Shown: piece by piece, positions 42,181 to 62,947 of the stretch
Layout: each line of letters starts with the position of its first letter
How positions within the stretch are numbered: the first letter of the stretch is position 1
Notes under the pieces: generated by a model
Databases searched by the model: none
Told to the model about the DNA's origin: nothing
What the model saw: the letters and a program-made list of their open reading frames with translations, nothing else
Assembly: GCA_043228905.1 (NCBI GenBank)
Contig: JBHGNT010000015.1
Span: 16,864,001 to 16,928,000 of the forward strand
Direction: 5' to 3'
Source of the DNA: Azolla caroliniana
Taxonomy: Eukaryota > Plantae > Polypodiophyta
DNA: 64,000 bases
Translations under genes and position numbers: made by a program

Positions 42181-42864
42181 GACTCAGACATAATGTAAAT
42201 AGCATTAGGAATGGTAAGTACTAGGTGGTAGGAATTAAAGGGGGGTTACTTTAAAGTCCCACACGCACATAAAGGAATGAAAGGGGGGGGGGGGGATCTC
42301 TAACACTGATCACGATGTAACGGTCTCCCCTTGTGCTATAAAAGGGGAGGCTTGAGCTTGTTTTAGGCATTCGGTTTTGGGAGGACGAAGTGTTGTCGGT
42401 TTGTGGGCCGAGCTCTCTCTCTCTCTCTCTCTCTTATGTATGATTAGGTAAGGAAGCCTCTGCTCGCGTAGGAAGCCCGTGAGCTCCCGACCAGAGGCTC
42501 TTGGATCTGTCTGTGAGTGTGTGTGTGCGGAGGGAAGGTGTGCTCCGAAGAACGCACAGCTCTGAAGCGGTCGAGCCCGGTTGTATTGTGCTTGCCTTAA
42601 TCTATTCGTTTCCATAGTTCGGGTCGATCTCATCTCGTGTCGGGTTTCATATCTATTTTTGTTTCTTTGTATCTATTTCCTCACTCTACCCGTGAACTAT
42701 GTGACGTGGTTTCTACTGCTAACCTATACATACACTATCCCGGTTCCGGTAACCGACCAGGCACGCCGTCGCGGTTGCTCTTCCTACTCCCTCTAACTCC
42801 TTGGTCCGAGACCCCCATGGTCCTGCTCGTTTCAACACATACTCGCGGAAAGCCACGACATCTT

Positions 42865-42880
42865 TGGTGAACCCGACGCG
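42865..42880 (+). promoter_or_regulatory. Primer-binding site complementary to tRNA-Trp 3' end
   Basis: TGGTGAACCCGACGCG versus the reverse complement of plant tRNA-Trp 3' end ...CACGUCGGGUUCACCA (15/16, recalled); 4 nt after the LTR end. Confidence 0.8.
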
Positions 42881-45800
42881 AAGGGGGTAGCAGAGGAGTC
42901 CGAAGATGAGAGGAAGCGAACTCGTTGAAGCAATGGCGGTGGTTGTAGACCACCTAGTTAACGCTCGCGAGGGCATGAGCACCCTTGATAGGGCCATAGA
43001 AGCGATGGTCGACAAGATAGACCTGTTTAATGGGAAAGATGCAACAAGCTACCTGGCGGCCTACAAGGCCGAGATGTTGATGAGGAATATTCCGAGGGAC
43101 ACATGACTGCTCGGATTTCCTCGGGTCGTAACGCCAAGCACCGAGGGATGACGGGGGTCAGTCGCGCGATCGGAGACCGCCATTCGACCAGAGGTGCATG
43201 TGGTGCGACGTTGTTGGCCACGTCCAGAGGGACTGTGCCGATTTCGCTGAGGCCCTTAAAGATAACGTGGTATACCTTTGGAATGGTCGGGTGCACGCCA
43301 ACGATACGCGGAGGGGCCTGGAGGTAAATACTAACCATGGTGGCATGGAAAGAATAATGGAGGAAGCTGCGGCTCGGAACGCCAAGGCCCTTCACAATTC
43401 GGTATCGATAGGGATCCGCATGGGCAAAGAAAGGGGCGTAGGCTACGGGAGCAATACCGGACTCTGGCCGCTCTTGCTAGAGGGCCTGTCCGGTTTGAGG
43501 CTAAGGAAGGAAGAGGCAGACCGCGCGGAGAAGTGGGTCCAAGAGGGAACCAAATGGAAGAAAAAATCGGCTTTGTGGAAGCTGCGTGCTAGAACTACGA
43601 AGTTCTGGTTGAAGATAAGCGGGCCGGGAAGGCCGGAGGGGCCGGACCTTCGAACCGGTACGAAATCGAGAGCGGGCCGAGAAAGGACGTCGTCGGTTCG
43701 GTTAACCGACAGGAAAAAGGGAAGGCAAAAACCCCAAATTTTTGGCTAGGCTCGGAAATAGAGCGGACAAGGGACCTGCATAAGGTTCTGGAGGAACGAA
43801 TCCTCGACAGCCGGGTGGAGCTCACCTTATGGGAGGTGTTGGGGATCGCGAAGAAGGAATTCCACGACTCTATCGTGGACGTAGTAAAAAGGAAGCGGCT
43901 CTCAACAGAGCCAGAACCGGAAAAGCCCATGGAGGTGAGAGCAACGCACATTGACGAGGTGGCCACAGAATATGAGTTCCTGGACAGCCACTACATGAAG
44001 CCACATTGGGCGAGGGCAACAACCGAGACCCCGGTCTGGATCGGGGACGTAAAGGAACCGGTGGTGGCATTGATTGACCATGGGTCTGAAATAAACCTAA
44101 TGTCCATGGACTTCTACAAGAAGGGTAAATGGCCGATCAATACGAAGCATGGGTGGAAGATATGCGCGGCGACCCGCGCTATGGATGAGCTTCACGGAGT
44201 GTGCCCAAACATCCGGGTGACGGTCGGGGATCTCGAGATCGATCAACACTTCTTCGTGCAGGAGACCTCCCATGCAGTGATTCTCGGCGAACCCTACATT
44301 ACGACAGCTCGAATGGAAACAAAGGTGCTAACAACGTTTCAACCTACGCTAGGTTGAAGAGTCAAGACGGTCGGCACTCCGTCTAGTTCTTGACGGTTCA
44401 GCCGAACCACGAGCGGAATCGGGACTCTCTCAGCGGCAAAGGTTGAGAGGATTATTAGAAAGGACTATCAAGACTTGGGCCTGCGGTAGTCCGGATGACC
44501 GGAGGTAACCCCACACTTGTACCATAAGTAGGAAACTTTGGTCCTCCGCTAATGGAGGTTGTACCATAACTGTCATCGATGGCCGGAAGAAGAAGCAGGG
44601 TTGAAAGACGCTTGAAGGCCTGTGGCGCCTTAGGCTCCGACGACGAGATCAGTAGCGTCGTGGACGCGGTCTCATTTGATGACACTCTCAAGGAGATCGC
44701 AAGGTTGGCCAAAGAGGACCTACGTGAAGATCGGATAATTCCGGTCGGTTCGGTCGAAATGTATGTCGGGCTGGATCGAACAACCCTAGTAACCACGAAG
44801 TACAAGATTGTGAAGCGGAAGGTGAGGCCAGTCGCGGCTCCCTTTCCAGAGGACAACTCGGAGCGGATGAAAGGGGTCGCGGCCAACCCAAGTTTACGAG
44901 ATCCGGCCAGCATAGGACACCTATTCACTAACGAGACGCTACAGGAGCTCAAGATCAGTGGGGGTGGCTTCCTACTACCCACGGAGGAAGACTAGTTTCG
45001 GAGGATGCTCGGAAGGCACGGGAAAGCCTTTGCACTCTCGCCGGGGGAGATCGGGTGCGTCGACCCGACGATCGTGAAGCCAATGGTGATCTTCACGGTA
45101 ACGCACGTACCGTGGAATCTCAAGCTGGTTTTGGTGTTGAGTGCTCACATACCGAAGTTGACGGAGTTGCTCAAACAGAAGATCGAGATGGGGATCCTCA
45201 AGCCCTCGAGCGCCCCATACTCGAATCGGTGGTTTACAGTGCCGAAGAAGAACGGCACGCTACGCTTCATTCAAGACATGTAGACGGTCAACAAGGTAAC
45301 CATTCGAAACGTAGGGATTGGGCCGACAATTGAAGAGTTTGCGGAGGCCTTCGTGGGGAGGTTGATCTACTCAGTCGACGACTTGTACTCCAGATATGAC
45401 CAGTTCCAGCTAGTCGTGGAGAGTAGGGATATCATGACGATGCGAACCCCTCTCGTCCTAGTTCGGATGTGTACCCTGCCACAAGGAGGGACCAACTCGG
45501 TGGCGCACATTGTTATTCCTTAGGGCCGGACAATGGCCTAACACAGGGTGTCTCCGGAAGACACTTCACCAAAGGGGTGTTACGGCGACATAACTTAAGA
45601 CACAACGATTAATTCGACTTAATTGGCTACTTAGCAATAAGGTATACACTTACTACACGCGTAAGATATAACAATTAATACAGAATGGTAATCAATACGT
45701 GAAGAAAAAACAAGAAGCTTACATTAATTCTCCGTTAAAGTTATACATTGTAACCGGGCCTTTATATAGGTCACCGGTGCTGCTTACGAAAACGGTGCCA

Positions 45801-45947
45801 ACCGACACCTGTTCGGAACCGGTCCGGATCCGAATCGGCATACCAATTCCGGTTCGTCTATAATCTACTTTACTTAATTAAAATATATTCTGAATAACCA
45901 TCCCTTTCACATTCTGGTCTTTGCACCTTTGTCGGCCGGGTAACACA

Positions 45948-45964
45948 TGGCACGCCTGTGGGAC
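45948..45964 (+). promoter_or_regulatory. Second PBS-like site (tRNA-Arg UCU 3' end) in the position where a PPT is expected
   Basis: TGGCACGCCTGTGGGAC, 2 nt from the left LTR. Its reverse complement GTCCCAC-AGGCGTGCCA resembles tRNA-Arg(UCU) ...GUCCCACCAGGCGUGCCA (recalled; 1-nt gap). Confidence 0.7.
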
Positions 45965-46539
45965 AGTACCTTGTACGTCGAATCCCACTATTCGACCCTT
46001 AGCCTTTTTTTTTTCCATAAAAAATATGCTCCATTGGTATTAAAATTAACAATGCCAAAGGCAATCTACAAATTGTACATAATAGTTTCCACTCCATAAG
46101 TATATATCGTAAAAAAAGGGACCAAATAAAGATGGCATTTGTTATGGCCTCTAAAAAACATCATGTTGCAGCCAACATTGGCTGAATGTGATTCCACATA
46201 TACTGAAGCTCTTTAGTATACCCATATTCAACCTATAAACAAATTCCTGGTTGTCCAATAGCTGTTCCCGTTCCTTGGCCTTTAATTTTCCTTTGTGAAT
46301 GTCCTTTTGTACCACTTAGGTAATACAAAACTGCTCTCTCCAATCAAGCCATTGAGGTAATCTGCTACTTCTTGGCCGTAGTCTTCTTCAAGCTGAAACT
46401 CAGAACAGCCATACATTGATTAGACCATAATCTCATCACAACCATGCTTCATTTAACCCACATCAGTCATGTCTCCGATTAACGTCATTGCCCAAAAACC
46501 CCAAAAATCTGTGATAAGAATAAAATCCGTCTAAAAATT

Positions 46540-47542
46540 CCTCACCCACTCGTGATGATTGGCTTCGACCCTCCCCACCATCTTCACTCATCCTCACCAC
46601 AAATATTTCTTCCTTTAGTCGACATCAGCCATCTCACCGATTAACCTGGTTCCAATGTCCACGCATATCCTGTATAATCAACAAAAACTTAGGTTAAAAC
46701 ATGTCCTCACCCACTCCTGCACATTGGCTTCGACCCTCCCCACCATCTTCACTCATCCTTAACACAATAATTCTTCATTCAGTCGACATCAGCAATCTCA
46801 CCAAATACCACGGTGGCAATGTCCACACATATCCTGTATTGATCAACACAAAATTAATAATGTAAACATTTCCTCACCCACTCGTTATAGTCGGCTTCAC
46901 CCTCCCCACCATCTTCACTCATCCTTAACACAGAAATTCTTCATACAGTCGACATCAGCCATCTCACCAATTAACACGGTGGCAATGTCCACGCATATCC
47001 TGTATTGATCAACACAAAATTAGTGTAAACATTTTCTCACCCACTCGTTATAGTCGGCTTCACCCTCCCCACCATCTTCACTCAACCTTATCACTTTCAC
47101 ACAGAAAATTTCTTCGTTCAATCCACATCAACCGTGTAGCCAATTATCGTCATGACCAATGTCCACGAAAAAACCTGTATCAATAACAAAACAGTTAATC
47201 TCAAAGTTTCCTCACTCATGATAGATGGCTTCGACCCCCCCGCCATCTTCCCTCATCCTTATCACAAAACAAGAAATTCTTCATTCAGTCCACGTCAGCC
47301 CTCTTGCCGATTAACATCTTGCACTGTTGACGAAAAACCTGTATTAAAAACAAAAATTAGTGTAAAAATTCCCCACCCACTCACGATTGTCGACTATGAC
47401 CCCGCCACCATACCCCATCCTTTTCTCTTACACATTCTTCCTTCTTTCCACATCAGCCCTCTCGTCGATTAGCTTGTTGCCAATGTCCGTGGAAAACCTG
47501 TATTTACAACACAAAAACAGTTTACACTTTCCTCACGCACTC
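46540..47542. repeat. Tandem array, ~165 bp x ~6, inside the non-autonomous element
   Basis: Unit starts CCTCACCCACTC at ~46540, 46705, 46872, 47035, 47210, 47371 and 47531; shared GGCTTCGACCCTCCCCACCATC, GTCGACATCAGCC and CAATGTCCAC..ATATCCTGTAT. Confidence 0.9.
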
Positions 47543-47545
47543 ATC

Positions 47546-48958
47546 CTAAACGGCTGTGTTCAATATAAATGGCGCTGGTGGCGGAAACAACCATCGAGGT
47601 GGAACATAATTCCACTTTACATCTTCCCCTGTTGCATCCAACAAAATAGGAATGGTTGACCAGACTCTTCTAAGTCGCTTTCTTTTCCGGTTAGGCCCAT
47701 TTCCACAACCCTTATAGCTATCATATTCACCTTTAACTATATTTACCAATAATTCCCAGAAAGATTTAACTTGATCCACAACATTAGTATCTTCATCATT
47801 ATATATTTTAGAACACCTTGCTTTCCAAATAATCCATAAGGCCAACGAGGAAATAACGTTCCAAACATAACACCTAGAAAAGAACTTGACTCCCTGCAAG
47901 GAGCTATTCGTAACGTACACCTGGAAACTTTTCACATGTAAAGTCAATGATGAATTATGATAATGATAAAAAACAGTTTCTTGATCCAACGTACCCCAAA
48001 AGATTGTACCCCACGTGAATTTAGTAGCCCTATACTTACGACTTAAAAGCCTAAGAATACGAGCCCAAAAACATTTGGCCGTAACACATTCCCAAAAAGC
48101 ATGATGTAATGTCTCATATGCCCAGCCACACCTACCACATGATCGATCAGGTATTGTTCCCCTCAATAAAGCTCCTACTGGCAATGCATAATGAATCATT
48201 AACCATCGAAAGTGCAATACCTTGTTCATACATTTAAGCAACCAAAGGTGTTTCCAAAACTTCAACATATATGTAGATGAGACATTACCTTCCTCCCAAT
48301 ATTTTTTTCCTGCCGGAATTGACTCTATCTCATTTAACAAAAACTTCCTACCCAGTGACACGGAATATGCAAAAAATGGAAGAACTTTCTCTTTCGTACT
48401 ATCAGACATTGGTAACTTCCAACCATAATCTAATGGATCCCACTGCAAATCAACAATTGGTCTAGAATTTAAAACCCATATATGAGATGAATACTTAGCA
48501 ATTAGTGGATTAGGATCTATAAATATCTTTTTTCCCAACCTAGCTATTACTCTCACTGGCAGCTGCCTGGCAGAAGACACAATTGAAGACTCCTCCTCCA
48601 CTACCAACAACCTACCATTATCGCAAACTTCATAAAAGTAAAGGCTACCATTTTGAGTATACAGACGAGCTCCTATTAGTATATTTAATCTCGAAAACAT
48701 ACCATACCAATTCAAACAATGACCAAAACTCAAAGTTGGTAATGTTACCTGATACACCGTTGACACTTGAGTTATCATAATGTTTGCCCCTCTGAAATTA
48801 GACACCCTACTCTTTTGGTCTTGCACTGAAGTCTGCAGGAAAGCAATCCAATCCGCAACCGTACGAGCTGGTCCATTATCCATTGCAGCCCAAGATAACC
48901 TAGGTCGTAAACCTAAGACACATGCCGCTTCATCAGTAAACAAAGGATTCCATAACAA
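47546..48958 (-). CDS. Uninterrupted 470-codon ORF: C-terminal part of an L1-LINE ORF2 (zf-RVT domain); no ATG at start
   Basis: PLLWNPLF; FWKHLW...KVLHFRWLMIHYALPVG...CGRCG..YETLHHAFWECVTAKCFW (zf-RVT: C-x2-C...H-x3-C); LWIIWKARCSKIYN. Starts at TTG after an in-frame TAG. Confidence 0.75.
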   Translation of the reverse strand: MLWNPLFTDEAACVLGLRPRLSWAAMDNGPARTVADWIAFLQTSVQDQKSRVSNFRGANIMITQVSTVYQVTLPTLSFGHCLNWYGMFSRLNILIGARLYTQNGSLYFYEVCDNGRLLVVEEESSIVSSARQLPVRVIARLGKKIFIDPNPLIAKYSSHIWVLNSRPIVDLQWDPLDYGWKLPMSDSTKEKVLPFFAYSVSLGRKFLLNEIESIPAGKKYWEEGNVSSTYMLKFWKHLWLLKCMNKVLHFRWLMIHYALPVGALLRGTIPDRSCGRCGWAYETLHHAFWECVTAKCFWARILRLLSRKYRATKFTWGTIFWGTLDQETVFYHYHNSSLTLHVKSFQVYVTNSSLQGVKFFSRCYVWNVISSLALWIIWKARCSKIYNDEDTNVVDQVKSFWELLVNIVKGEYDSYKGCGNGPNRKRKRLRRVWSTIPILLDATGEDVKWNYVPPRWLFPPPAPFILNTAV

Positions 48959-49455
48959 CGGCTATCCAAGATATCCAGAATACTCTGCTCCAGGGTATCC
49001 GATGGTTGTTCAGAACTCTGTTGTTGTTACTGCTATTGTGGCTGTTGTTGCTGTTGTGGTTGTGGCTCCTCCGACCGTTACTCCTGAGAGGGCGTCTGTT
49101 CGGCTCCCGGTACCGGTGGTTGTGGCGGTGATACCTCCTGGTTGCTCCGTGGTTCAATTTGCCGGACCGGTGGTGCTTGCCAATTTAACAAGTTATACTC
49201 ACACCGTTCCATTGTGTGACTTCTGGAGTGGCCGAGCAAGCATTGGGAACGCATGGTGCATTCCAACGCTGAATGTCTGGCATTCATGCATGTCGTACAC
49301 TAAACTGCTTGCCAGAAACAGAGGTCCTCTTCCGTTGGTAGTGCCCGCTGAAGGGCGCCCATGGTTAGCCATGAACTTGAGGTTTCCATTTCCCGAACTC
49401 GGTCGATCACTTGATCTATGTTGCTGGTGTGGAAATCAATAACAGTGCACTAAGG

Positions 49456-49476
49456 CGACCCCCATTGTGGTCGCCA
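49456..49476 (-). promoter_or_regulatory. Primer-binding site complementary to tRNA-Arg(UCG) 3' end
   Basis: Minus strand TGGCGACCACAATGGGGGTCG, 7 nt from the LTR end. The + strand CGACCCCCATTGTGGTCGCCA compares with tRNA-Arg(UCG) ...CGACUCCCACUGUGGUCGCCA (recalled). Confidence 0.8.
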
Positions 49477-49814
49477 AAAATTGTGTTATTCCTTAGGGCC
49501 GGATAATGGCCTAACACATGGTGTCTCCGGAAGACACTTCACCAAAGGGGTGTTACGGCGAGATAACTTAAGACACAACGATTAATTCGACTTAATTGGC
49601 TACTTAGCAATAAGGTATACACTTACTACACGCGTAAGATATAACAATTAATATAGAAAGGTAATCAATACGTGAAGATAAAACAAGAAGCTTACATTAA
49701 TTCTCCGTTAAAGTTATACATTGTAACCGGACCTTTATATAGGTCACCGGTGCTGCTTACAAAAACGGTGCCAACCGGTACCTGTTCGGATCCAGATCGG
49801 CATACCGATTCCGG

Positions 49815-50406
49815 TGTCGTGACGATTTTCGGCTACGGTGTGAAACCGAGTGAGACGAATAAACCAAGGATGTGCAACATTGCACATACACTTAGCAAAT
49901 AAGCCTCCTAAGGCCTAGTGGCACTTGAGTTCATACATAGGGGTGCAAGCAAGGTTTGAACCTTGCACCTCTAAGATACAAGATAATTGCCTTACCACTA
50001 GGACAACTATCATATAGTTGAGATTTTATGTATTTACTTTTCATATATGAATTATAGATGAAACAACCATTAGAAAACCATGTGCACAAAACCATGGTTT
50101 TAGCCCATGGTTTTGTGCATGTCACAAGCATGGAAAGACCTATAAAAGCCTCTACTTGAGCTTGTGTAAGGGGGGCTCAATATGTGATATCACCAACACC
50201 ATTATCATCGATATAATTATATTTGTCTTTATCTTCTTCATATTTTTCTACTTCTCAAGTGCACAATCTTTCTTCTTCTCAAGTAAACCAATTTCATCTA
50301 ATCTTACATTGATCGTCATCTCTTCAATAATTCTGCAAACATCCTCCCCAGACCAAGACCCCGGTGGTCACTCAAGTAGCACACGCACGCGCGAATCTTT
50401 GCGACA
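49815..50406 (+). mobile_element. Solo LTR 'C' (592 bp), gypsy-A-related, inserted in the LTR of the non-autonomous element
   Basis: Termini TGTCG...CGACA; 4-bp TSD CCGG (49811-49814 / 50407-50410); TATA CCTATAAAAG at ~50139; absent from the partner LTR. Confidence 0.88.
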
Positions 50407-50550
50407 CCGGTCCCTCTGTTCACTACATAATTATAATCTACTTTACTTAATTAAAATATATTCTGAATAACAATCCCTTTCACATTCTGGTCTCTGCACC
50501 TTTGTCGGCCTGGTAACACACATGGTGAATGCAATGAACAAGGTTTTGCA

Positions 50551-51262
50551 AGACTACATCTGTTGGGTGACAGGTCCCTCCGGATGGGAAGGGAGAAGAT
50601 CAGTGCTGATGAACAAACTCGGCCTCGGCCGAATCCGGATGAGGAGTACCTGGCTACGGAGAGCCGGATGGTGAAGACCCGGTATGAACCGGATGAGGAG
50701 TACCCAGCTACGGAGAGCCGGATGGTGAAGACCCGGTATGAACCGGATGAGGAGTACTCAGCTACGGAGAGCCGGATGGTGAAGACCCGGTATGAACCGG
50801 ATGAAGAGACATATTCGTAAATATGTTTTTTCTGAGAGCCCATCGAGGCTATATTTGTAAATAGCCGAAAAGTCATATTAGTATAAATATGACTTAGGGC
50901 AAATGTGTGTTGTAGTTGTTGTCATCTCCTTGTTGGTGCAAGAAGAAGAGAGAGCACGTAACAGTGTACAGACAGAGAAAGAGAGAAAGAGGTCGTTGCC
51001 TCTGTTGTAACCGCCGCCTGTGGCGAAGATCTGTGAGCACGAGGTCGTTGCCTTAGTGAACTCACTATTGTACATTCTTACATAGTGACAGTTTGCAGCC
51101 TGTGGGCTGCCGTGGTTTTTCCCTTAGTTTGGGGTTTTCCACGTAAACTTCCTGTGTATCTTCCTCTTCTTTGTGTCGTGTTTTATTGCCCGTTTTTCTG
51201 TGTATCATTCTAAGCTCGGTTGTGGCCGAGCGTTGCGCATAAGGAGCCTTGAGTTCCCGTCA
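50551..51262 (+). mobile_element. Solo LTR 'D' copy 1 (712 bp) with 54-bp tandem repeats, in RT of gypsy A
   Basis: TG...CA termini; TSD ACATC (50546-50550 / 51263-51267); host frame rejoins as QDYIPDITMPFLDD. 54-bp units at 50635, 50689, 50743, 50797. TATA GTATAAATA at ~50881. Confidence 0.92.
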
Positions 51263-53940
51263 ACATCCCAGACATCACCATGCCCTTCTTGGATGACATC
51301 CCGATCAAGGGATGTCCGGAGGAAGCGAAGTATGAATTGATCGGGCCCGATGGATGCCGGAGGTTTGTCGCGGACCACATCTCCGACTACGAGAAGATAC
51401 TACAAAAAGGCTTGAGGGCGCTCGGCTTACCTTCTCCGGGGAGAAGTCGTCTTTCGGACAATCTGAGATCCTAGTAGTGGGGCCCCTATGCGGGCCATAT
51501 GGCCGGAAACCGTCTCCGGCGAAAGTAGAGGCCATCTCCGTGATGGAGGAATGCGGGTCAGTCACGGAAGTCCGGCAATTCCTAGGAGCGTGCGTCTTCT
51601 ACCACATTTGGATCCCACACTATGCGCACCTTGCCGAGCCGCTCTACGAGTTGTTGAAGAAGGGTCGGAAGTTCGAATGGGGCGCAAAGCACACAGAGGC
51701 GGTCCGAAAACTGAAGGAGAGGCTGACGACAACATCCACTCTCCAAAAAGCGGTATACAAGGCGGAAACTCTGGTTTACGTAACGGTGGATACGAGTCCG
51801 ACCGGAATCGGGTGGGTGGTTAATCAGGAAGACGAGGACGACACACGGTTCCCCATCCGGTTCGGTGCGAAGGTGCTGAGCGAGCAGCAACAAGGATGGG
51901 TCCGGATGCGGCATGGACGAAAGGCTTATCAGTTCTTTCTACGGAACGGTTAGCTATGGAAGCACTCGAAGAGATGGACCGACACTCCACTCTAGGTGGT
52001 GGCGAAGAAGGAAGAGCAATCGATGCTCGTCTCAAAGTTCCACGAGAGCCCCTAGTCTGGACACCGGGGCACATGGGCCACGTTGGAGAAACTAAAGGAT
52101 AAGTATTGGTGGCCAAGGATGTATCAAGACATGCACAAGTTCATAACGACGTGCGAGAGTTGCCAAGTCCATTCCGAAGTCCGGCATCGAGAAGAGTTGC
52201 ACCCGACTTACCCATCGGCCATTCATTTCAAATGGATGGTCGACCTGGTGACAATGCCGATAGGGGTGGGGTAGATGAGGTACTTGGTGCTCGCTAGAGA
52301 AGACCTGACAAACCAGGTGGAAGGCCAATCGTTTACGAACAAGACGACCGCAGTTGTATGCTGGTTCCTGATTGAGGATGTAATTTGCCGGTACGGGTGT
52401 GTGGGTAAGATCATGGTCGAACGAGAGGAGCTGGATGCACTAGAAGCTAAGGTGTTCTTTGACCGACTAGGGGTCAAACTTTCCCTCACCACGGCGTACA
52501 ATCCGGAAGCCAACGGGGAGGTTGAGCGCAGGCACAGGCCGATCATGAAGGCCATAGTACGAGCATGCGAGGGTCGAGTAGGAAACTAGCCAAGCTTCCT
52601 ACCTTACGTACTGTGGGCCGACCGAACTACGCACAGTTCGGTAATCGGGTACATGCCGGTGGAGCAGACGATCTCGTCATGGATTGCGGTCGATTGGACA
52701 GAGGAGATGAGCCGAGAGGAGCTGTTGACGGCGTGAATCCGACAGATCGAGCAAAGACTAGAAGATGTCGAGCGAGCGACAACGAGAACAGAGGATGCGA
52801 GGAAGAGGGACAAGGCCCGGTTTGACCAGACGCGACTCCGATCGAGGAAGATTGTGGAAGGCGACTAGGTGCTGGTTTACGATAGCAACCTTGACAGTCA
52901 GCACCGGTTGACTCGGAAATTCGCACGACAGTGGTTTGGGCCCTATGTGGTGACAAGCACAAACAACAATGCCATGTACCACCTGGCGGAGCTCGACGGG
53001 ATGAGGCTCACGGTTCCGGTCGCGGGTAAATGGATCAAGGCCTTTAAGAAGAGACATGAAGTGGAATTGAATCCAAAGACCGGGGAAGGTATCGTCGGGA
53101 GCGAGGAGTCAGATGGGGACCAGACCAACAACGGATCGGGAGAAGATGAGTAAAGGCTGGGCCGGAATCTCCACCACTATAGTACTTGGCACATGCCAGA
53201 GGATGTGCAGTTTGGTGGGGGTGGATGTCTTGAAGGATTCCGGCCATAAAGAGAAACAGAGCAAAGTGCGCGCGAATAGGTGTTTGCACCGATGCACACA
53301 AATCAAGTATTATGTACAGATATTATCATGATATGGCAAGATTCGAACCCATGACCTTATGTTACATAGGTCAAGCTCTTTACCATTAAACTATATATTG
53401 TAATACGAAAGATATTGTTTTCATTTAAGTTTTACTATAGAAAATTGATGTATATTTCAGATTTCTCTTGAACATTCTAGAAACTTCAGGAGTACTCCCG
53501 AGAACACGGAGGCACAAAGCATTATTTCGAACCAAATCGATTCAACGCCAGTCTTAAGCCTCCTAGCCATCCTTGTATATTCTTTCACATAATATATCGT
53601 TGTCATCATCATTTTATCTCTCTCTCTCTCTCTCTCTCTCTCCTTCTCTCGAGTGTTCTACACAATCTTTTCCTCTTAGTACTAATTTCCTCTCTATCTC
53701 AATATTATTCTTGATAGACATAATGTAAATAACATTAGGACTGGTAAGTATAGGTGGTAGGAATTAAAGGGAGATACTTTAAAGTCCCACACGCATAGAA
53801 ACGAATGAAAGAGGGGGGGGGGGATCTCTGACACCGATCACAATGTAATGGTCTCTCCTTGTGCTATAAAAGGGGAGGCTTGAGCCTATTTTAGGCATCC
53901 GGTTTTGGGAGGACGAACTGTTGTCGGTTTGTGGGCCGAG

Positions 53941-53976
<36 letters not shown>

Positions 53977-54252
53977 TGTGTACAATTAGGTAAGGAAGCC
54001 TATGCTCACGTAGGAAGCCCGTGAGCTCTCGACCAGAGGCTCTTGGATCTGTCTGTGAGCGTGTGTGTGCGAAGCGAAGGTGTGCTTCGAAGAATGCACG
54101 ACTCTGCTATTGGCTGAGTCTGGTTGTATTGTGCTTGCCTTAATCTATTCGTTTCCATAGTTTGGGTCGATCTCATCTCGTGTCGGGTTTCATCTCTATT
54201 TTTGTTTTTTCATATTTGTTTCCTTGCTCTACCCGTGAACTGCGTGATGCGG

Positions 54253-56228
54253 TGTCGTGATGTGGCGTGCTCGAGAGTGGGAAAACCCGGCGAAAGGGGA
54301 GGGGTCAAAATGTGCATGTGCAATGTGTGTGCACACAAATTAATTGCACACATGAAAAAGAAAAGGCAGAAGAAAGGGTGGAAAGGATGCATAGAAGCCC
54401 GTGTAAAAAGTAAGAGAGAGGAGAGATAAAAAGTAGAGGGGAGATAGGCTAAGAATTTATAGAGATAGAATCGTATATTATATAAGAGAGAGTTAATGGC
54501 TAGTGGATAGTCACATTGACTTCTAGCTAGAGGTGCACGGTTTAGATCTATTCTTACAATGTAGCGTCATTTAAGGAATTTTATTCCTTTTTGCATTAAA
54601 GACGAAATTGGCGACCTCCCTTCCTTTTTTTCCTATAAAAGGAGGTCGAGGGGGCTCATTTAGGAGGACGTTTGGGGAGGAGGAGACTATCGCCATTTTT
54701 CTTTCGGAGCTCTTCATCTTCTTATTCACCACTTCTCTTCATCTCATACCCCTTCATCCCCCCATCGCCACGTGTTTGTCTTCTTCGCGTCGGCACTCGA
54801 AGTGCTTGTGAGCCCAAGCTTCGTTGGTTCAACATTGCTCCACCCCGTTCGTCGTTGCGAGCCTGTGTGCTCGTCGTTCGGGTGGTCATGGTTCGTTGGG
54901 ATTGGCATTTTGGTGGTGCTCGTGTGTTCATCTTCGTCGTGTTCGGATTTGCTCTTGTCTCTAAGGGCATTTAGTATTTATGTTTTGATTGAGCTTGTGG
55001 TTAACTATAAGTTGCCATTGTAATCAAACCCTATTTTATAAAGGGTCCTCTTGTGTTGGAATCGAACACGTATTTATCTCTTTGGTCGATATCATTCGTG
55101 TTTCTTTCTTTGTTCGTGTCTTCCTTGTACATTCGACCGCTTGTGACGAGGGAGCGTTTCGGGCGTGCCCATGCACCTCTCCTCCTCATAAAGACGTACG
55201 AGCATTTGTGCGTCTATTTGTGTCTTCCTTGTACGTTCGACCGTCTTGTGACGAGGGACCGTTTCGGGCTTGCCCATGCACCTCTCCTCCTCATAAAGGT
55301 GTACGAGCATTTTGTGTGTGTGTTTGTGTCTTCCTTGTACGTTCGATCGTCTTGTGACGAGGGACCGTTTCGGGCTTGCCCATGCACCTCTCCTCCTCAT
55401 AAAGGCGTACAAGCATTTGTGTGTGTGTTTGTGTCTTCCTTGTACGTTCATCCATCTTGTGACGAGGGAGCATTTCGGGCATGTCCATGCACCTCTCCTC
55501 CTCATAAAGACGTACGAGCATTTGTGCGTGTGTTTGTGTCTTCCTTGTAGGTTCAGCCGTCTTGTGACGAGGGACCGTTTCGGGCTTGCCCATGCACCTC
55601 TCCTCATCATAAAGGCGTACGAGCATTTTGTGCGTGTGTTTGTATCTTCCTTGTACGTTCGGCTGTCTCGTGACGAGGGAGCGTTCGGGCTTGCCCATGC
55701 ACCTCTCCTCCTCATAAAGGCATACAAGCATTTTGTGTGTGTGTTTGTGTCTTCCTTGTACGTTTGGTCGTCTTGTGACGAGGGAGCGTTTCGGGCGTGC
55801 CCATGCACCTCTCCTCCTCATAAAGGCATACGAGCATTTGTGCGTGTGTTTTGTGTCTTCCTCGTACGTTCGACGTCTTATGACAAGGGAGCGTTCGGGC
55901 GTGCCCATGCACCTCTCCTCCTCATAAAGACGTACGGGCATTCGTGTTTGTGTTATCGTCCCCTTGTGGGTTCATCTTGCGTGCTCATCTTGCTTGTACT
56001 CGTTTGATCACTTGGCTCGTGCGGTGATCTCGAAAGGTCGATGAGTCATGATCAACGAGAGCCACCGGCCTCACAAAACAAAGGGCAACGAGACCTTGCT
56101 CGAGAAGGGGTCAGGAAGTAGTATTGTCGTAAAGCAAACCTCGGGTCTTCTCTATCCCTTGAGTACTCCCTAATCCAAGACCCCCATGGTCCCGCCCAAG
56201 TAACACACTCGTGCGAAACTTCGCGACA
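54253..56228 (+). mobile_element. Solo LTR 'B' (1976 bp), gypsy-A-related, inserted in the 3' LTR of gypsy A
   Basis: Termini TGTCG...CGACA; 4-bp TSD GCGG/ACGG; the host LTR is continuous across it when compared with the 5' LTR; TATA CCTATAAAAGG at ~54632. Confidence 0.88.
55116..55942. repeat. Tandem array, ~105 bp x 8, each unit an imperfect hairpin
   Basis: Units start GTGTCTTCCTTGTAC at 55116, 55220, 55326, 55431, 55536, 55642, 55747 and 55853. Confidence 0.95.
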
Positions 56229-57558: not shown

Positions 57559-60500
57559 TATGCCAACAAACTCCCTCATAAAAGGGCTACTATTTCCTAT
57601 GTATACAAATAACTAGGTTATCTCCCCTGTGAACCTAGATTACAAATCTAATCTATAGTTACAAGTATGCATACAAGATTGTCGACATTCAACAGAACCA
57701 ACAAAGGTAAGGTTTGTGTCTAGCCTAATTCAACTTATCTTTTGGATTGTGTGTTGTCTAGGTCGACATGTCTTAGTCGGACTAATCGACTTGTTTAGAT
57801 CAATTTACCTCTGAGTGGACTCGTTTGCTCAAATTGACTCATGTTTGATTCTGACACTTGATCTGCTTCCCTCTTGTGCTAGCTCCCGAGCTCCTCACTG
57901 GATCTTCAATCTGTCTTTGGCTTTATTCGATTGTCGATCATTTTCTCTCTAGTCGACATCCTCGCCGAGTGTTGCATCTTCATCCTCTTTGTATTACGAC
58001 TCTTTGGATTTTTTCTTCTTGGTTCGTCCGACCAGGTTAGTCTTTGTCTTCCCTTCTATTGTTGTTCATTTAGATTCTTTCTGCTCGGTCGCTTGTCGTA
58101 GTCCCATCATTGTCCTGAAGCATTGATAGACTATATTTCGAATGAGGTGTTATGCGCTCTAAGAGTCGCAATAGATGGTTGATTCGTCTTGTCACCGAGA
58201 AGTTGGCTGATAATCGATGCAACCATATGGCTTCCTTCGTTGCCTATGATGTTCCAGGTTGTGCACTCTTGAAGCTTCAACCTCCATGATACGACGCCGC
58301 CGCCATAGGTGAAAAGATAGCTTGATGTCGACTTCTGATTATTCGTATTTACGGCATAGTCTGAGTCGGTATAGCCTTCGACTTTGGTAAGAGTAGCCAA
58401 TCTGAAAGTCAGTTGTGCATCCTTGGTTCCTCTCATACACCTAGAGATGTGCGCGACAACCTCCCAATGTTTCCGTCCTAGGTTCAACATGTACGCCACA
58501 TGCAAGGTCAGGTTGGGTCGCCACCATTGCGTACACGATACTTCTTATGGCCGATGCATAGGGTATCTTTCCATTAAGCTTACTCTCCTCATCTGTTGAA
58601 GGAGAGTCTCTCTCTGATAGTCTGATCGATGTCGGTAGCGGAGTCGATGCTAGCTTCGAGTTCTCTATGTTGAAGTGCTTCAACACCTTAATAATGTAGT
58701 CAGACTAGGAGAGTAAGAGAGTCTTTGTCATCCGATTTCGTTCGATCCCCATGCCCAATATTTATCGGGCTTGTCTAAGTTCCTTTATCACAAATTTGTC
58801 ATGAAGGCTCCTCTTTAGTTCTCTGATCTCTGACCCCTACACCATGGGCAACGTCGCGTTGCGTCGCCACCATTGCATACATGATACTTCTTATGGCTAA
58901 TCCATAGGGTATCTTTCCATTGAGCTTACTCTCCTCATCTATCGAAGGAGAGTCTTTCTCTGATAGTCTGATCGATGTCAATAGCGGAGTTGATCCTAGC
59001 TTTGCGTTCTCCATGTTGAAGCGTTTCAACACCTTATGAATGTAGTCAGATTGGGAGAGTCAGAGAGTCTTTGACGTTTGATTTCACTCGATCTTCATGC
59101 CCAGTATGTGTCGAGCTTGTCTGAGTTCCTTCATCACCTCCACTTTTGTTCTCTGATCTCTACTCAATTACTCCCTACAATGAGCATGTCATTGACGTAT
59201 AGGATTTGATAGATACGGGACTCGTCGGTCAATTGCTGAATATACATACATGGGTCGGAGTCGGACCAGCGGTAGCCGAGCTGCCAAATGTAGGTATCAC
59301 ATTTCTAATACCACATCCTCGGCGCATGTTTTTAGCCATAAAGGATTTTCTTCGGTCGACATATGCGGTGACCTTCCTCCCCCGTTGTCGTGAAGCCTAT
59401 CGGTTGAGACATATGGATATCTTCTTCCAAGTCTCCGTGTAGGAATGTCGTCTTGACATCCAGTTGCTCGAGCTCTCGGTCTATAGTTGCTACAACCCCA
59501 AGTAAGAGTCGACGGGTGGTCATCTTGATTAATGATGAGAATATCTCATCATAGTCGACCCCATGTTCTTGTTTGAATCCCTTTGCGATGAGCCAAGCTT
59601 TGTATTTGGGCTTCTCTGAATTAGATACATATTTTTATTGAAATGCCCATTTGTAGGGCAACGATTTCCTTCCGGTTGGTAGTTCAACCAACTCCCATAT
59701 CGTGTTCGTATGTATTGAGTCCATCTCGGATCTCATGGCTTGTAGCGATGTGTTGGCGTCTGACATGTCTATAGCTTCCTTATAGGAGCTTGGTTTGCAT
59801 ACATTAGTGTAATTGGCATAGTCAAGGCCTGGTTGGAAGAATTTTGTTGGTCTTCGAACTTGTCCAGATCTCCTGGGTGTTGAGTTGATTGGTTCAGATC
59901 CTTTTATCATCAATGTTGGCTGATCGGCATTACTTGAACCTTCTTCAGGAGTCCTTTTGGATGTCTCGCCCCTGCAATAGGATTTCAACGATGTCAAATC
60001 ATCCTCCCCTTCTTCTAGATCGATTGAAAAAGGATTCAAGGACTTGGCCGAGTTGATTCAGCTTTTCGTCCCCTTAGACTTATTGGGGTTGATGGTCGGA
60101 TTGACTCTGTCTCTTTCGACCCAACACTTCTCGACTTTGCCTTTTTCGACTTTGGTTGATTTGGCTTTGCCTTGGTTGGCCAATTCGGCTCTTCTCAATC
60201 TTTTAGTCGAATCGATTTCGATTTCGACCAATGGACCTCTTGCCGATTCGGATTCGGCAGGGGGGTCGTTGGCTCAGTCGATTTCAACCATTTGTCGAAT
60301 CTCCGATCCTTATATGGCATCTCTGTCAATGTCAAAGGAAACCTTTTTCCCGATTTTCAGCTGAATTGGGTTGGAGTGTATTGAGTCTTCATTGAAGACT
60401 ACGTCACTACTCTAGATCAATTTCCGGTTCTCTGGGTCCCATTGGCGATTGCCAAAGTTCCCATTAGTCCCATAACTAAGAAATATACACTTAAGTGCAT

Positions 60501-62947
60501 GGGGTGCCAACTTGGTCCTTTTCTCCATGGGGATGAAGGTGTGGGATTTGCATCCAAATATAAGGAGCCTATCGTAGGTCGTTGTTTGCCAGACCATAAT
60601 GCATGTGGCACTTCAAGTCGTATTGCTCTTGACGACGACAGATTGATCAACTAGACTGTCATCTACAATGCTTTGGCCCAAAATTCCAGCTTCAGTCTGG
60701 ATTGTTGGAGCATTGCCATCACTCTCTCTTGGATCGTGCAATTGATCTGTTCTACCATACCATTATGCATGGGAGTATATGCAACGGTCTTTTGGTACCA
60801 GATCCCTTTGTCAGACAAGCATTTTTTGAAGGCTCAGGCGGTGTATTCACCTCCGTTGTCGGATTGAAGTGTCTTCACTCGGTATCCAAACCGGTTCTCC
60901 ACTTCAACTAGCTCGTGAGTGAAGACTTTGAGCGCTTTGTCTTTCGGCCTAATTGAATAGGCCCATACTTTCCAATTACAGTCATCTACGAATGTAATGA
61001 AGTACCGGGACCCCCCTAATGACCTTTGTAAGGATTGTTATACCATTCTTAGTAGAGAGAGTGTGAACTTCGGGTTTGTTTCCCGTAACGACAATGCTCG
61101 TAAAAGTCTATCTTCAACTGGAGCTTCGGGATGTAGTCGACCGCGATTAGTCAGTCCAGTCTGACTTGAGACATATGGCCGAGTCGGCCATGCCATAAGT
61201 TCGAGTCGGTCGATTCAGCTATTTTCACTGTGCCCTCTGGATTGATCCCCATTAATAAATACAAGTTGTTGTGCTTGCATCCGTTCCCGATTTTCATGTT
61301 TCTTGGGTTGATCATCCATGACAAATCGTTGAGAGTTGTTTAGTACTCGTCTTTAGCTAGCATGCCGATGGAGATTAGACTCCTTTTAAGCTCGGCTACA
61401 TGCCAGACATGGTGCAGGACGATCCTGCTATTTGGCAATTGAATTGGTACTTCGCCGATTCCGGCGATTTTGCATTTTTGCCCATTGCCGAGTTTGATAG
61501 TGTCATCGGCTCCGGTCGAATATTTCGAAAACCATTCGATATTTGGGGTCACGTGAAATGTGGCACCAGAGTCCAATAGCCACGTTCGTGTGTCCTGCAC
61601 ATTGTAAAGGACTTCTTCGATCATTGAGTCCTCCAAAGAGAGGATTTATCTAGATTGGGAGTCGGCAACATTGATTTGGTTGCTGACTAGAGAACAGTTT
61701 GAGTCGGAACGTCCTGAATTCCACTCAAATACACTCTCCTTTCTTTTAATTGACCAGCAGTCGGCAACATTGTGACCAACTTTTCTGCAGTGGGTGCAGA
61801 AATCACTTGGTCGACTATTCCTCAACTTCGACTGTTGTTGGTCTCCCCTCTTTCATGGTCGACTGGTGTTTCGACTTGTTCTCTCGGTCAACTTGGTCGA
61901 ATGGTGGGCTTCTGCCGACTCATCGATGGTGAGTCCCATCAATTCTCATCGAATGTCCTCAGTGAGGACTTCTCCAATCGTCTCATCTAGATTTAGATTT
62001 GAATAGTTGTTGGCAAAAGTCGTGTGGAATAGCTCCCAACTCATCGACAAGCTCGAAAGGAGGGCAAGGGCTTTAACTTCTTCTTCAAAGTTAATCCCTT
62101 GGGAGGAGAGTTCAAATAACACTCGACTGAAGGTGTTGATGTGAGAGGTTGTTGGATCCGTCTCTCTCATCTTCATGTTGAACAACTATCGAATTAACAT
62201 CAACTTGATGAGGAGGATTTCTCCTACTACACTTCATGTAGTTTCTCCCACAAAGAGAATGCAATCGTCTCCTTTGCCATACTAAAATAGACATTTTTGG
62301 CCAGGTGCATTCGAATGGTCAATTTGGCTATTTCATCCATAGATCGCAATTCTTTTGCAGACATTCAAGCCGGCTTGGTGTTATGCCGAATGACTTCAAT
62401 ATGTCGTCGGATGATGAGGACATCCTTCATCATTTCCTTCCAAAGGGCGAAGTTCTTCCCATCAAACTTCCTGTTGGGAGACAGGTCCCTCCGGATGGGA
62501 AGGGAGAAGAACAGTGCCGATGAACAAACTCGGCCGAGGCTGAAATCGGATGAGGAGTACTCGGCTACGGAGAGCCGGATGGTACAGACCCGGTGAAGAC
62601 TGGATGAGGAGTACCCGACTACGGAGAGCCGGATGATGCAGACCCGGTGAAGACCGGATGAGGAGTACCCGGCTACGAAGAGCCGGATGGTACAGACCCG
62701 GTGAAGACCGGATGAGGAGTACTCGGCTACGGAGAGCCGGATGGTACAGAACCGGTGAAGACCGGATGAGGAGTACCCGGCTACGGAGAACCGGATGAAG
62801 AGACATATTTGTAAATATGTTTCTGATAGTCCATCAAGGCTATATTTGTAAATAGCCGAAAAGTCATATTAGTATAAATATGACTTAGGGCAAAAATAGT
62901 TGTGGTTGTCATTTTTTGTTTTGCACGCCATAGAGAGTGCATAACTG

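Follow-up and report, generated by a model that had tools for sequence, protein, structure and literature searches.

The window analysed here, a stretch of 64,000 nucleotides from Azolla caroliniana (assembly GCA_043228905.1, contig JBHGNT010000015.1, positions 16,864,001–16,928,000 of the forward strand), contains at positions 45511–50518 a long terminal repeat (LTR) retroelement that carries a sense copy of a tRNA 3' tail at the place of the polypurine tract (PPT). Both direct LTRs were bounded by TGTTA...TAACA, with TG...CA ends, and CACAT was present on each flank. An empty-site joint, 45505→50519, which skips 5013 nucleotides and shares five letters, was found in contigs of three related species. 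Together with the intact CACAT, this joint indicates that the unit was inserted as one piece with a 5 bp target-site duplication (TSD), and the repeats and the joint confirm the element ends proposed in an earlier note on this DNA. The insertion target was the reverse transcriptase (RT) gene of another gypsy element, other copies of which show the empty site. The left and right LTRs differed by approximately 3.5% substitutions and one 11 bp indel, so the insertion was not recent.

Contrary to that note, the element is not complete: a long interspersed nuclear element (LINE) at 46007–48963, a 616 bp insertion and a broken gag rule this out. The joint 46006→48964, observed in contigs of two runs, identifies the LINE as a later insertion, and its two flanks were compared separately. 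Once the LINE was subtracted, the interior of the element amounted to about 580 bp. The window element is an old, non-autonomous derivative with an internal deletion that fused the primer-site region to the C-terminus of gag. The coordinates are collected in Table 1.

The orientation was given by the gag relic. A 69-amino-acid piece at 49078–49287 on the minus strand holds a CX2CX4HX4C knuckle, a motif found in 3 of 3000 shuffles. A phmmer search with this piece returned 48 proteins among 1.84 billion representatives (best E value 1e-12), corresponding to gag C-termini with a conserved double knuckle. With tblastn, 53 such gag proteins aligned to 49087–49470 on the minus strand, with E values down to 1e-41. 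This homology makes the minus strand the sense strand, as had been proposed. The window gag consists of the C-terminus only and is interrupted by stops and frameshifts; a search for family copies with the 69-amino-acid piece, made through a homologous-protein lookup, gave no matches. The closest relative, the contig L125, was 77% identical in nucleotides and possesses a full gag upstream and an RVT_1 domain downstream, and the gag of L135 matched PF03732. By gag and the linked pol, the lineage is assigned to the LTR retrotransposons of Ty3/gypsy type. On the plus strand, an open frame of 159 codons (48966–49442) lies antisense to the gag relic and was equalled in length in 24 of 3000 shuffles. 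In copies without the LINE this frame would continue from an ATG overlapping the tRNA-tail site (45947–46006). It had no homologue in the protein search and no Pfam match, and is taken as an antisense by-product.

Table 1. Parts of the window element, in window positions.
Feature	Position	Strand	Basis or remark
Target-site duplication CACAT, left copy	45506..45510		Empty-site joint shares 5 letters
3' LTR (element sense), 435 bp	45511..45945	-	Read on minus strand, starts TGTTACCCGG
2-nt spacer between CCA and LTR, TG in element sense (CA on plus strand)	45946..45947	-	
Sense copy of tRNA-Arg(UCU) positions 59–76 including CCA, one base short	45948..45964	-	
Upstream module part: conserved 13-nt insert, then T-arm 5'-half-like GTGGGATTCGA	45965..45986	-	Alignments with relatives; model R1, E value 1e-15
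Remnant of the element 3' untranslated region, ending at the LINE joint	45987..46006	-	Joint 46006→48964
Secondary 5'-truncated LINE insertion	46007..48963	-	Contig joints, zf-RVT open reading frame, terminal A run
Internal DNA of the element downstream of gag: Q-rich relic and block CTGGATATCTTGGA, common to L127	48964..49086	-	
Broken gag C-terminal relic; CX2CX4HX4C zinc knuckle at 49258–49299	49087..49470	-	Homology and shuffles
Minus-strand primer-binding site, 21 nt, tRNA-Arg-type 3'-end layout	49456..49476	-	Sequence reading
7-nt spacer CAATTTT, 5' LTR to primer site	49477..49483	-	Relatives: CAATT
5' LTR (element sense), split by a foreign 616 bp insertion (49816–50431)	49484..50518	-	
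Target-site duplication CACAT, right copy	50519..50523		Empty-site joint

The primer site and the 3' junction

The 5' side of the window element is ordinary. The primer site TGGCGACCACAATGGGGGTCG has the layout of a tRNA 3' end in its 21 nucleotides, namely TGG, the discriminator, an acceptor of 7 nt, a T stem of 5 nt and the first part of the T loop. A tRNA-type primer site following the 5' LTR had been announced earlier; the site is present, not directly adjacent to the LTR but 7 nucleotides away (CAATTTT). The relatives read TAACA CAATT TGGCA... on the same side. According to passages of PMC6317226, tRNA-Arg is a common primer of plant gypsy elements other than chromoviruses. Neither primer-site string was present in the supplement of that paper, and a text search of papers returned only a vertebrate ERV9 site. 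The first ten nucleotides of the primer site are identical to this ERV9 site, discussed in PMC4724089 and disputed between Arg and Trp. The primer site also lies within a 7 bp inverted repeat (GGCGACC ... GGTCGCC, 49455–49477) and can fold on itself.

At the other end, no PPT was observed beside the 3' LTR of the window element, nor at the corresponding junctions of two relatives, L127 and L137. Purines occupied 7 of the 15 positions beside the 3' LTR, with a longest run of 3 over the 25 nucleotides before it, and 9 of the 15 beside the 5' LTR, with a longest run of 5. The TSD and the empty-site joints define the U3 boundary from which the tract is missing. The plus strand reads instead TGGCACGCCTGTGGGAC at 45948–45964, two nucleotides (CA) from the left LTR, so that the absence of a purine run and the sequence found in its place were both described correctly in the earlier note. 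This was the sole copy in the window, for which 0.04 matches with up to three mismatches are expected by chance, and there was no second site of this signature in the window.

The origin of the tail was traced in metagenome contigs, using a pattern of T loop, T stem and acceptor that allowed for the form of the site. Among the 120 matches, 20 were tRNAs according to ARAGORN. The 18 that could be named were all tRNA-Arg, and the 73-nt eukaryote-type genes were tRNA-Arg(UCU). Compared with the latter, the 17-mer lacks one base (CCCAC-AGG versus CCCACCAGG). It corresponds to positions 59–76 with the CCA, minus one base, with 11 contiguous matches that include the CCA; no tRNA of the one-base-short form occurred among the metagenome matches. 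The proposed sense tail of tRNA-Arg(UCU) with its CCA was thus found at the PPT position, one base short and as part of a longer tRNA-derived segment than the 17 nucleotides first recognised. The whole module measures approximately 40 nucleotides and covers about positions 47–76 of the tRNA plus an insert. Upstream of the tail the similarity to the tRNA was marginal, 69 of 2000 shuffles scoring as high. The tail match stops exactly before A58, where reverse transcriptase usually halts when it copies a primer tRNA. The CCA is added after transcription, so the tail derives from a mature tRNA.

Several wider searches were negative. ARAGORN found no tRNA in the window, and Rfam gave no tRNA or other credible match in 45400–50650 at E values up to 10. 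With model R1, neither the window nor the loci L121–L139, which are contigs with gag relatives, yielded an additional module. None of the 100 metagenome matches that were not tRNAs was a retroelement junction, and viral contigs, when scanned, matched neither the junction nor the primer site.

The relatives were short ENA contigs. Of these, only L127 and L137 extend to the 3' junction, and none supplied the 3' end of an autonomous element. L127 (1443–1496) is a gag-only element with a gag 61% identical, and the gag of L137 (764–817) was about 44% identical; L135 and L136 are gag-only, as are these two. Both carry the junction in the sense of gag. Aligned with window positions 45936–45990 on the minus strand, the three junctions showed 84% column identity, whereas the LTRs and the other non-coding parts were unalignable. 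All three contain the 5' half of the tRNA T arm up to A58, which in L127 agrees with the tRNA at 12 of 12 positions. A 13-nt insert follows, then the tail, lacking one base and ending invariantly in GGCGTGCCA, then exactly two nucleotides (TG in the window element and L127, GA in L137) and the TGTT of the LTR. The same shortfall in all three indicates a trait of the lineage and not a decay of the window copy. In the reads of three species, the bin that includes the module exceeded the LTR bins in depth by 3- to 17-fold or more, and 23 contigs departed from the window sequence only beyond position 45982, which indicates that the module is common to more families than this LTR. By its sequence conservation, the tRNA-tail module is a feature of the lineage. 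A one-off rearrangement, which would have overturned the earlier proposal, does not account for a module kept in the diverged L127 and L137. The suggestion that the element could replicate from either transcript orientation did not hold, as in all three elements, that of the window and the two relatives, the module lies downstream of gag in the sense direction and is followed by the start of an LTR.

Two other contigs showed related arrangements. L126, obtained through a more distant gag homologue and without DNA similarity to the window element, has a tRNA-Arg(UCU) site at 255–285 placed as an ordinary 5' primer site, which suggests that elements with this kind of gag may use tRNA-Arg(UCU) as a primer. 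At 1694–2190 of this contig, a second and different LTR starts with TGTTACCCG. It is preceded by a degenerate T-arm-like stretch without the CCA and 2-nt junction, and the same junction occurred in four contigs. In L134 (1133–1180 and 2640–2670), an LTR has on its left side an Arg-type tail, ...CGTGGTCGCCA, plus five nucleotides, and on its right side CAATT and TGGCACACCC... This contig may be a collapsed or tandem assembly; if it represents a collapsed element, its two tRNA identities are exchanged in comparison with those of the window element. If this reading is correct, a different tRNA tail can stand at the same place, a better fit to tRNA pairing than to the recognition of one sequence.

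Initiation of the plus strand

The module of about 40 nucleotides most likely defines the initiation of the plus strand. The strongest argument is its position: the start of the plus strand sets the U3 boundary, and a primer ending at the A of the CCA gives CA plus two nucleotides. Folding of the module RNA was not consistently better than that of shuffled sequences (z scores of -0.85, -1.98 and +0.91), and a base-pairing role is therefore favoured over a structural one. A conserved RNA hairpin in the module was also considered and is unsupported by these scores.

We tentatively propose that this is a lineage without a PPT, in which the start of the plus strand would be set by the tRNA-Arg(UCU)-derived module through annealing of a free tRNA to the minus-strand DNA. 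In this model, the minus-strand DNA would copy the module, and the 3' end of a free tRNA-Arg(UCU) would anneal to the complementary DNA, over 11 contiguous base pairs in the window element. The reverse transcriptase would then extend the tRNA into U3-R-U5, and RNase H would remove the tRNA, as at an ordinary primer site. The result would be a canonical CA plus 2-nt end for the integrase. It is possible, rather than probable, that both DNA strands are primed by tRNAs, one tRNA-Arg acting at the RNA primer site and tRNA-Arg(UCU) at the inverted site in the minus-strand DNA, with the PPT replaced.

Several observations count against priming by a free tRNA. The model presupposes a host tRNA with the 3' end ...AGGCGTGCCA, and the reference tRNAs came from metagenomes, not from the host's own set. 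Because of the missing base, the perfect duplex with the tRNA cannot exceed 11 bp in the window element, or 9 bp in its relatives. The 13-nt insert is conserved yet is not explained by pairing with the tRNA. The 5' spacer of 5–7 nucleotides shows that the lineage does not always keep 2-nt ends. The three examples are all non-autonomous or gag-only, and the one RNA run mapped contained no reads from the LTRs.

Some of these points are better explained by a primer acting in cis, which we consider a serious though less likely alternative. The module RNA, hybridised to the minus-strand DNA, would mimic the hybrid of a tRNA tail and its primer site, be spared by RNase H, be cut after the CCA and prime the plus strand without a free tRNA. 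This route would account for the conservation of about 25 nucleotides upstream of the tail, including the 13-nt insert, and for the tolerance in all three families of a tail one base short; it gives the same DNA product and so fits the 2-nt spacing and the absent PPT equally well. Resistance of PPTs to RNase H, however, comes from helical features that the mixed, GC-rich module does not have, and there would be no RNA–DNA junction to guide the cut. The tRNA route and the cis route yield identical DNA and cannot be told apart by sequence alone.

It is unlikely that the module is a passive fossil, left by an ancient event of read-through or template switching at a tRNA primer and kept by descent, with the plus strand primed elsewhere, for example from a purine-rich stretch approximately 45 nucleotides upstream or from a cryptic site. 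The 13-nt insert lies exactly at the A58/G59 boundary, where the reverse transcriptase normally stops, and resembles a scar; purine-rich stretches do exist about 45 nucleotides upstream in the window element and in L127. A passive relic would nevertheless drift in sequence and in spacing, whereas the U3 boundary falls two nucleotides after the CCA in three families with unalignable LTRs. Furthermore, a primer located 45 nucleotides upstream would place the module inside the LTR, and the module lies outside. A plus-strand element in which the tRNA-Arg(UCU) site served for ordinary priming, a one-off rearrangement or chance motifs would be consistent with the textbook geometry of the plus-strand site (LTR...CA, two nucleotides, TGG) and with the 159-codon frame across the internal part, rarely matched by shuffles, but such readings are very improbable in view of the gag homology on the minus strand, the order of gag, module and LTR start in L127 and L137, the single-unit insertion marked by the intact TSD and the empty site, the lack of a homologue for the plus-strand frame, and the exclusion of chance for both motifs.

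Neighbouring features of the window

The LINE inside the element, on the minus strand, possesses an open reading frame of 470 amino acids (47546–48958) with a zf-RVT domain, typical of the tails of plant LINE ORF2. Its tail comprises approximately seven tandem repeats of 165 bp (about 46440–47560), followed by the terminal A run. PolyA RNA of a related species covered the LINE part only, with the first mates on the plus strand; close relatives of the LINE are transcribed in that species. Many reads parted sharply from the LINE sequence of the window at 46246–46249, 46334 and 46389–46397. The high-copy 616 bp insertion in the 5' LTR contains, on the minus strand, a stretch resembling a tRNA-derived short interspersed nuclear element (SINE), together with a TATA-box region similar to the LTR of the host element. 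A second SINE-like stretch, similar to the one in this insertion, is located at about 53290–53400.

The LTR of the host gypsy element (42186–42871) contains a TATA box at about 42338. The element also has a gag knuckle at 43198–43240 and, at 42865–42880, the primer site TGGTGAACCCGACG, which we take to be tRNA-Trp-like. A related LTR-like copy at 53716–54256 suggests that host elements, spaced by about 11.5 kb, are arranged in tandem or have recombined. In both host copies, the RT segment is closely followed by tandem repeats of 54 bp (50635–50808 and 62471–62827), which encode a repeated acidic peptide. The second host copy also contains approximately eight tandem repeats of 105 bp, 87–90% alike, at 55111–55976. 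On the minus strand, 58266–59856 corresponds to a fragment of gypsy pol that shares 38–48% identity with L124 pol and includes an internal duplication (58502–58831 and 58848–59161); no LTR or module was found near this fragment.

Comparison with known systems

To our knowledge, priming of the plus strand from a PPT is treated as universal, a constant of retroviruses and LTR retrotransposons, and the PPT is among the features by which annotation tools define such elements. In the literature searched, mostly outside subscription journals, no account of a tRNA tail in place of the PPT was found, and a plus-strand start at a tRNA tail in an LTR element appears to be undescribed. If real, a lineage with this module would represent a new solution to the priming of the second strand. 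Such elements may then be mis-annotated or oriented wrongly, as both of their ends look like primer sites, and tRNA-Arg(UCU) and its 3' fragments would be candidate regulators of both replication steps. The proposal would be directly testable by the presence of covalent tRNA on plus-strand strong-stop DNA.

The window element resembles canonical Ty3/gypsy elements in its TG...CA LTRs, its 5 bp TSD, the CCHC knuckle of its gag and a primer site, complementary to a tRNA, close to the 5' LTR. It differs in having a tRNA tail with CCA where the PPT sits at the U3 boundary; in passages of PMC6317226, most elements carry both a primer site and a PPT. As in terminal-repeat retrotransposons in miniature (TRIM), large retrotransposon derivatives (LARD) and TR-GAG elements, the window element is short, lacks pol and would depend on autonomous partners. 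These classes are described as having a PPT, which is absent here. The LTR of 435 bp and the interior of about 580 bp with a gag relic are larger than those of TRIM elements (LTRs of approximately 100–250 bp and a non-coding interior of approximately 100–300 bp). The gag is broken, whereas TR-GAG elements possess an intact gag open reading frame as their only gene; L127 and L135–L137 are closer to this class. No cloverleaf was recognised by tRNA models, which sets the module apart from tRNA genes and tRNA-derived SINEs.

Two systems with tRNA-related sequences come nearer. The Helenus TRIMs (Kojima 2024, PMC10886601) have a tRNA-like Pol III promoter sequence inside the LTR and a normal primer site and PPT between the LTRs. 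They are, like the window element, non-autonomous LTR elements with tRNA-derived sequence. In the window element, no tRNA was detected in the LTRs; its tRNA-derived piece, a 3' tail that includes CCA, lies outside the LTR at the PPT position. In Ty3, where Gabus et al. in 1998 reportedly described a bipartite primer-binding site, the 5' site and regions of the 3' genome are said to pair with the primer tRNA. Common to both cases is a gypsy-type genome with tRNA-related sequence close to its 3' end. The 3' segments of Ty3 are complementary to the tRNA and serve the initiation and transfer of the minus strand, whereas the RNA of the window element has the same sense as the tRNA, so that only the minus-strand DNA could pair with it.

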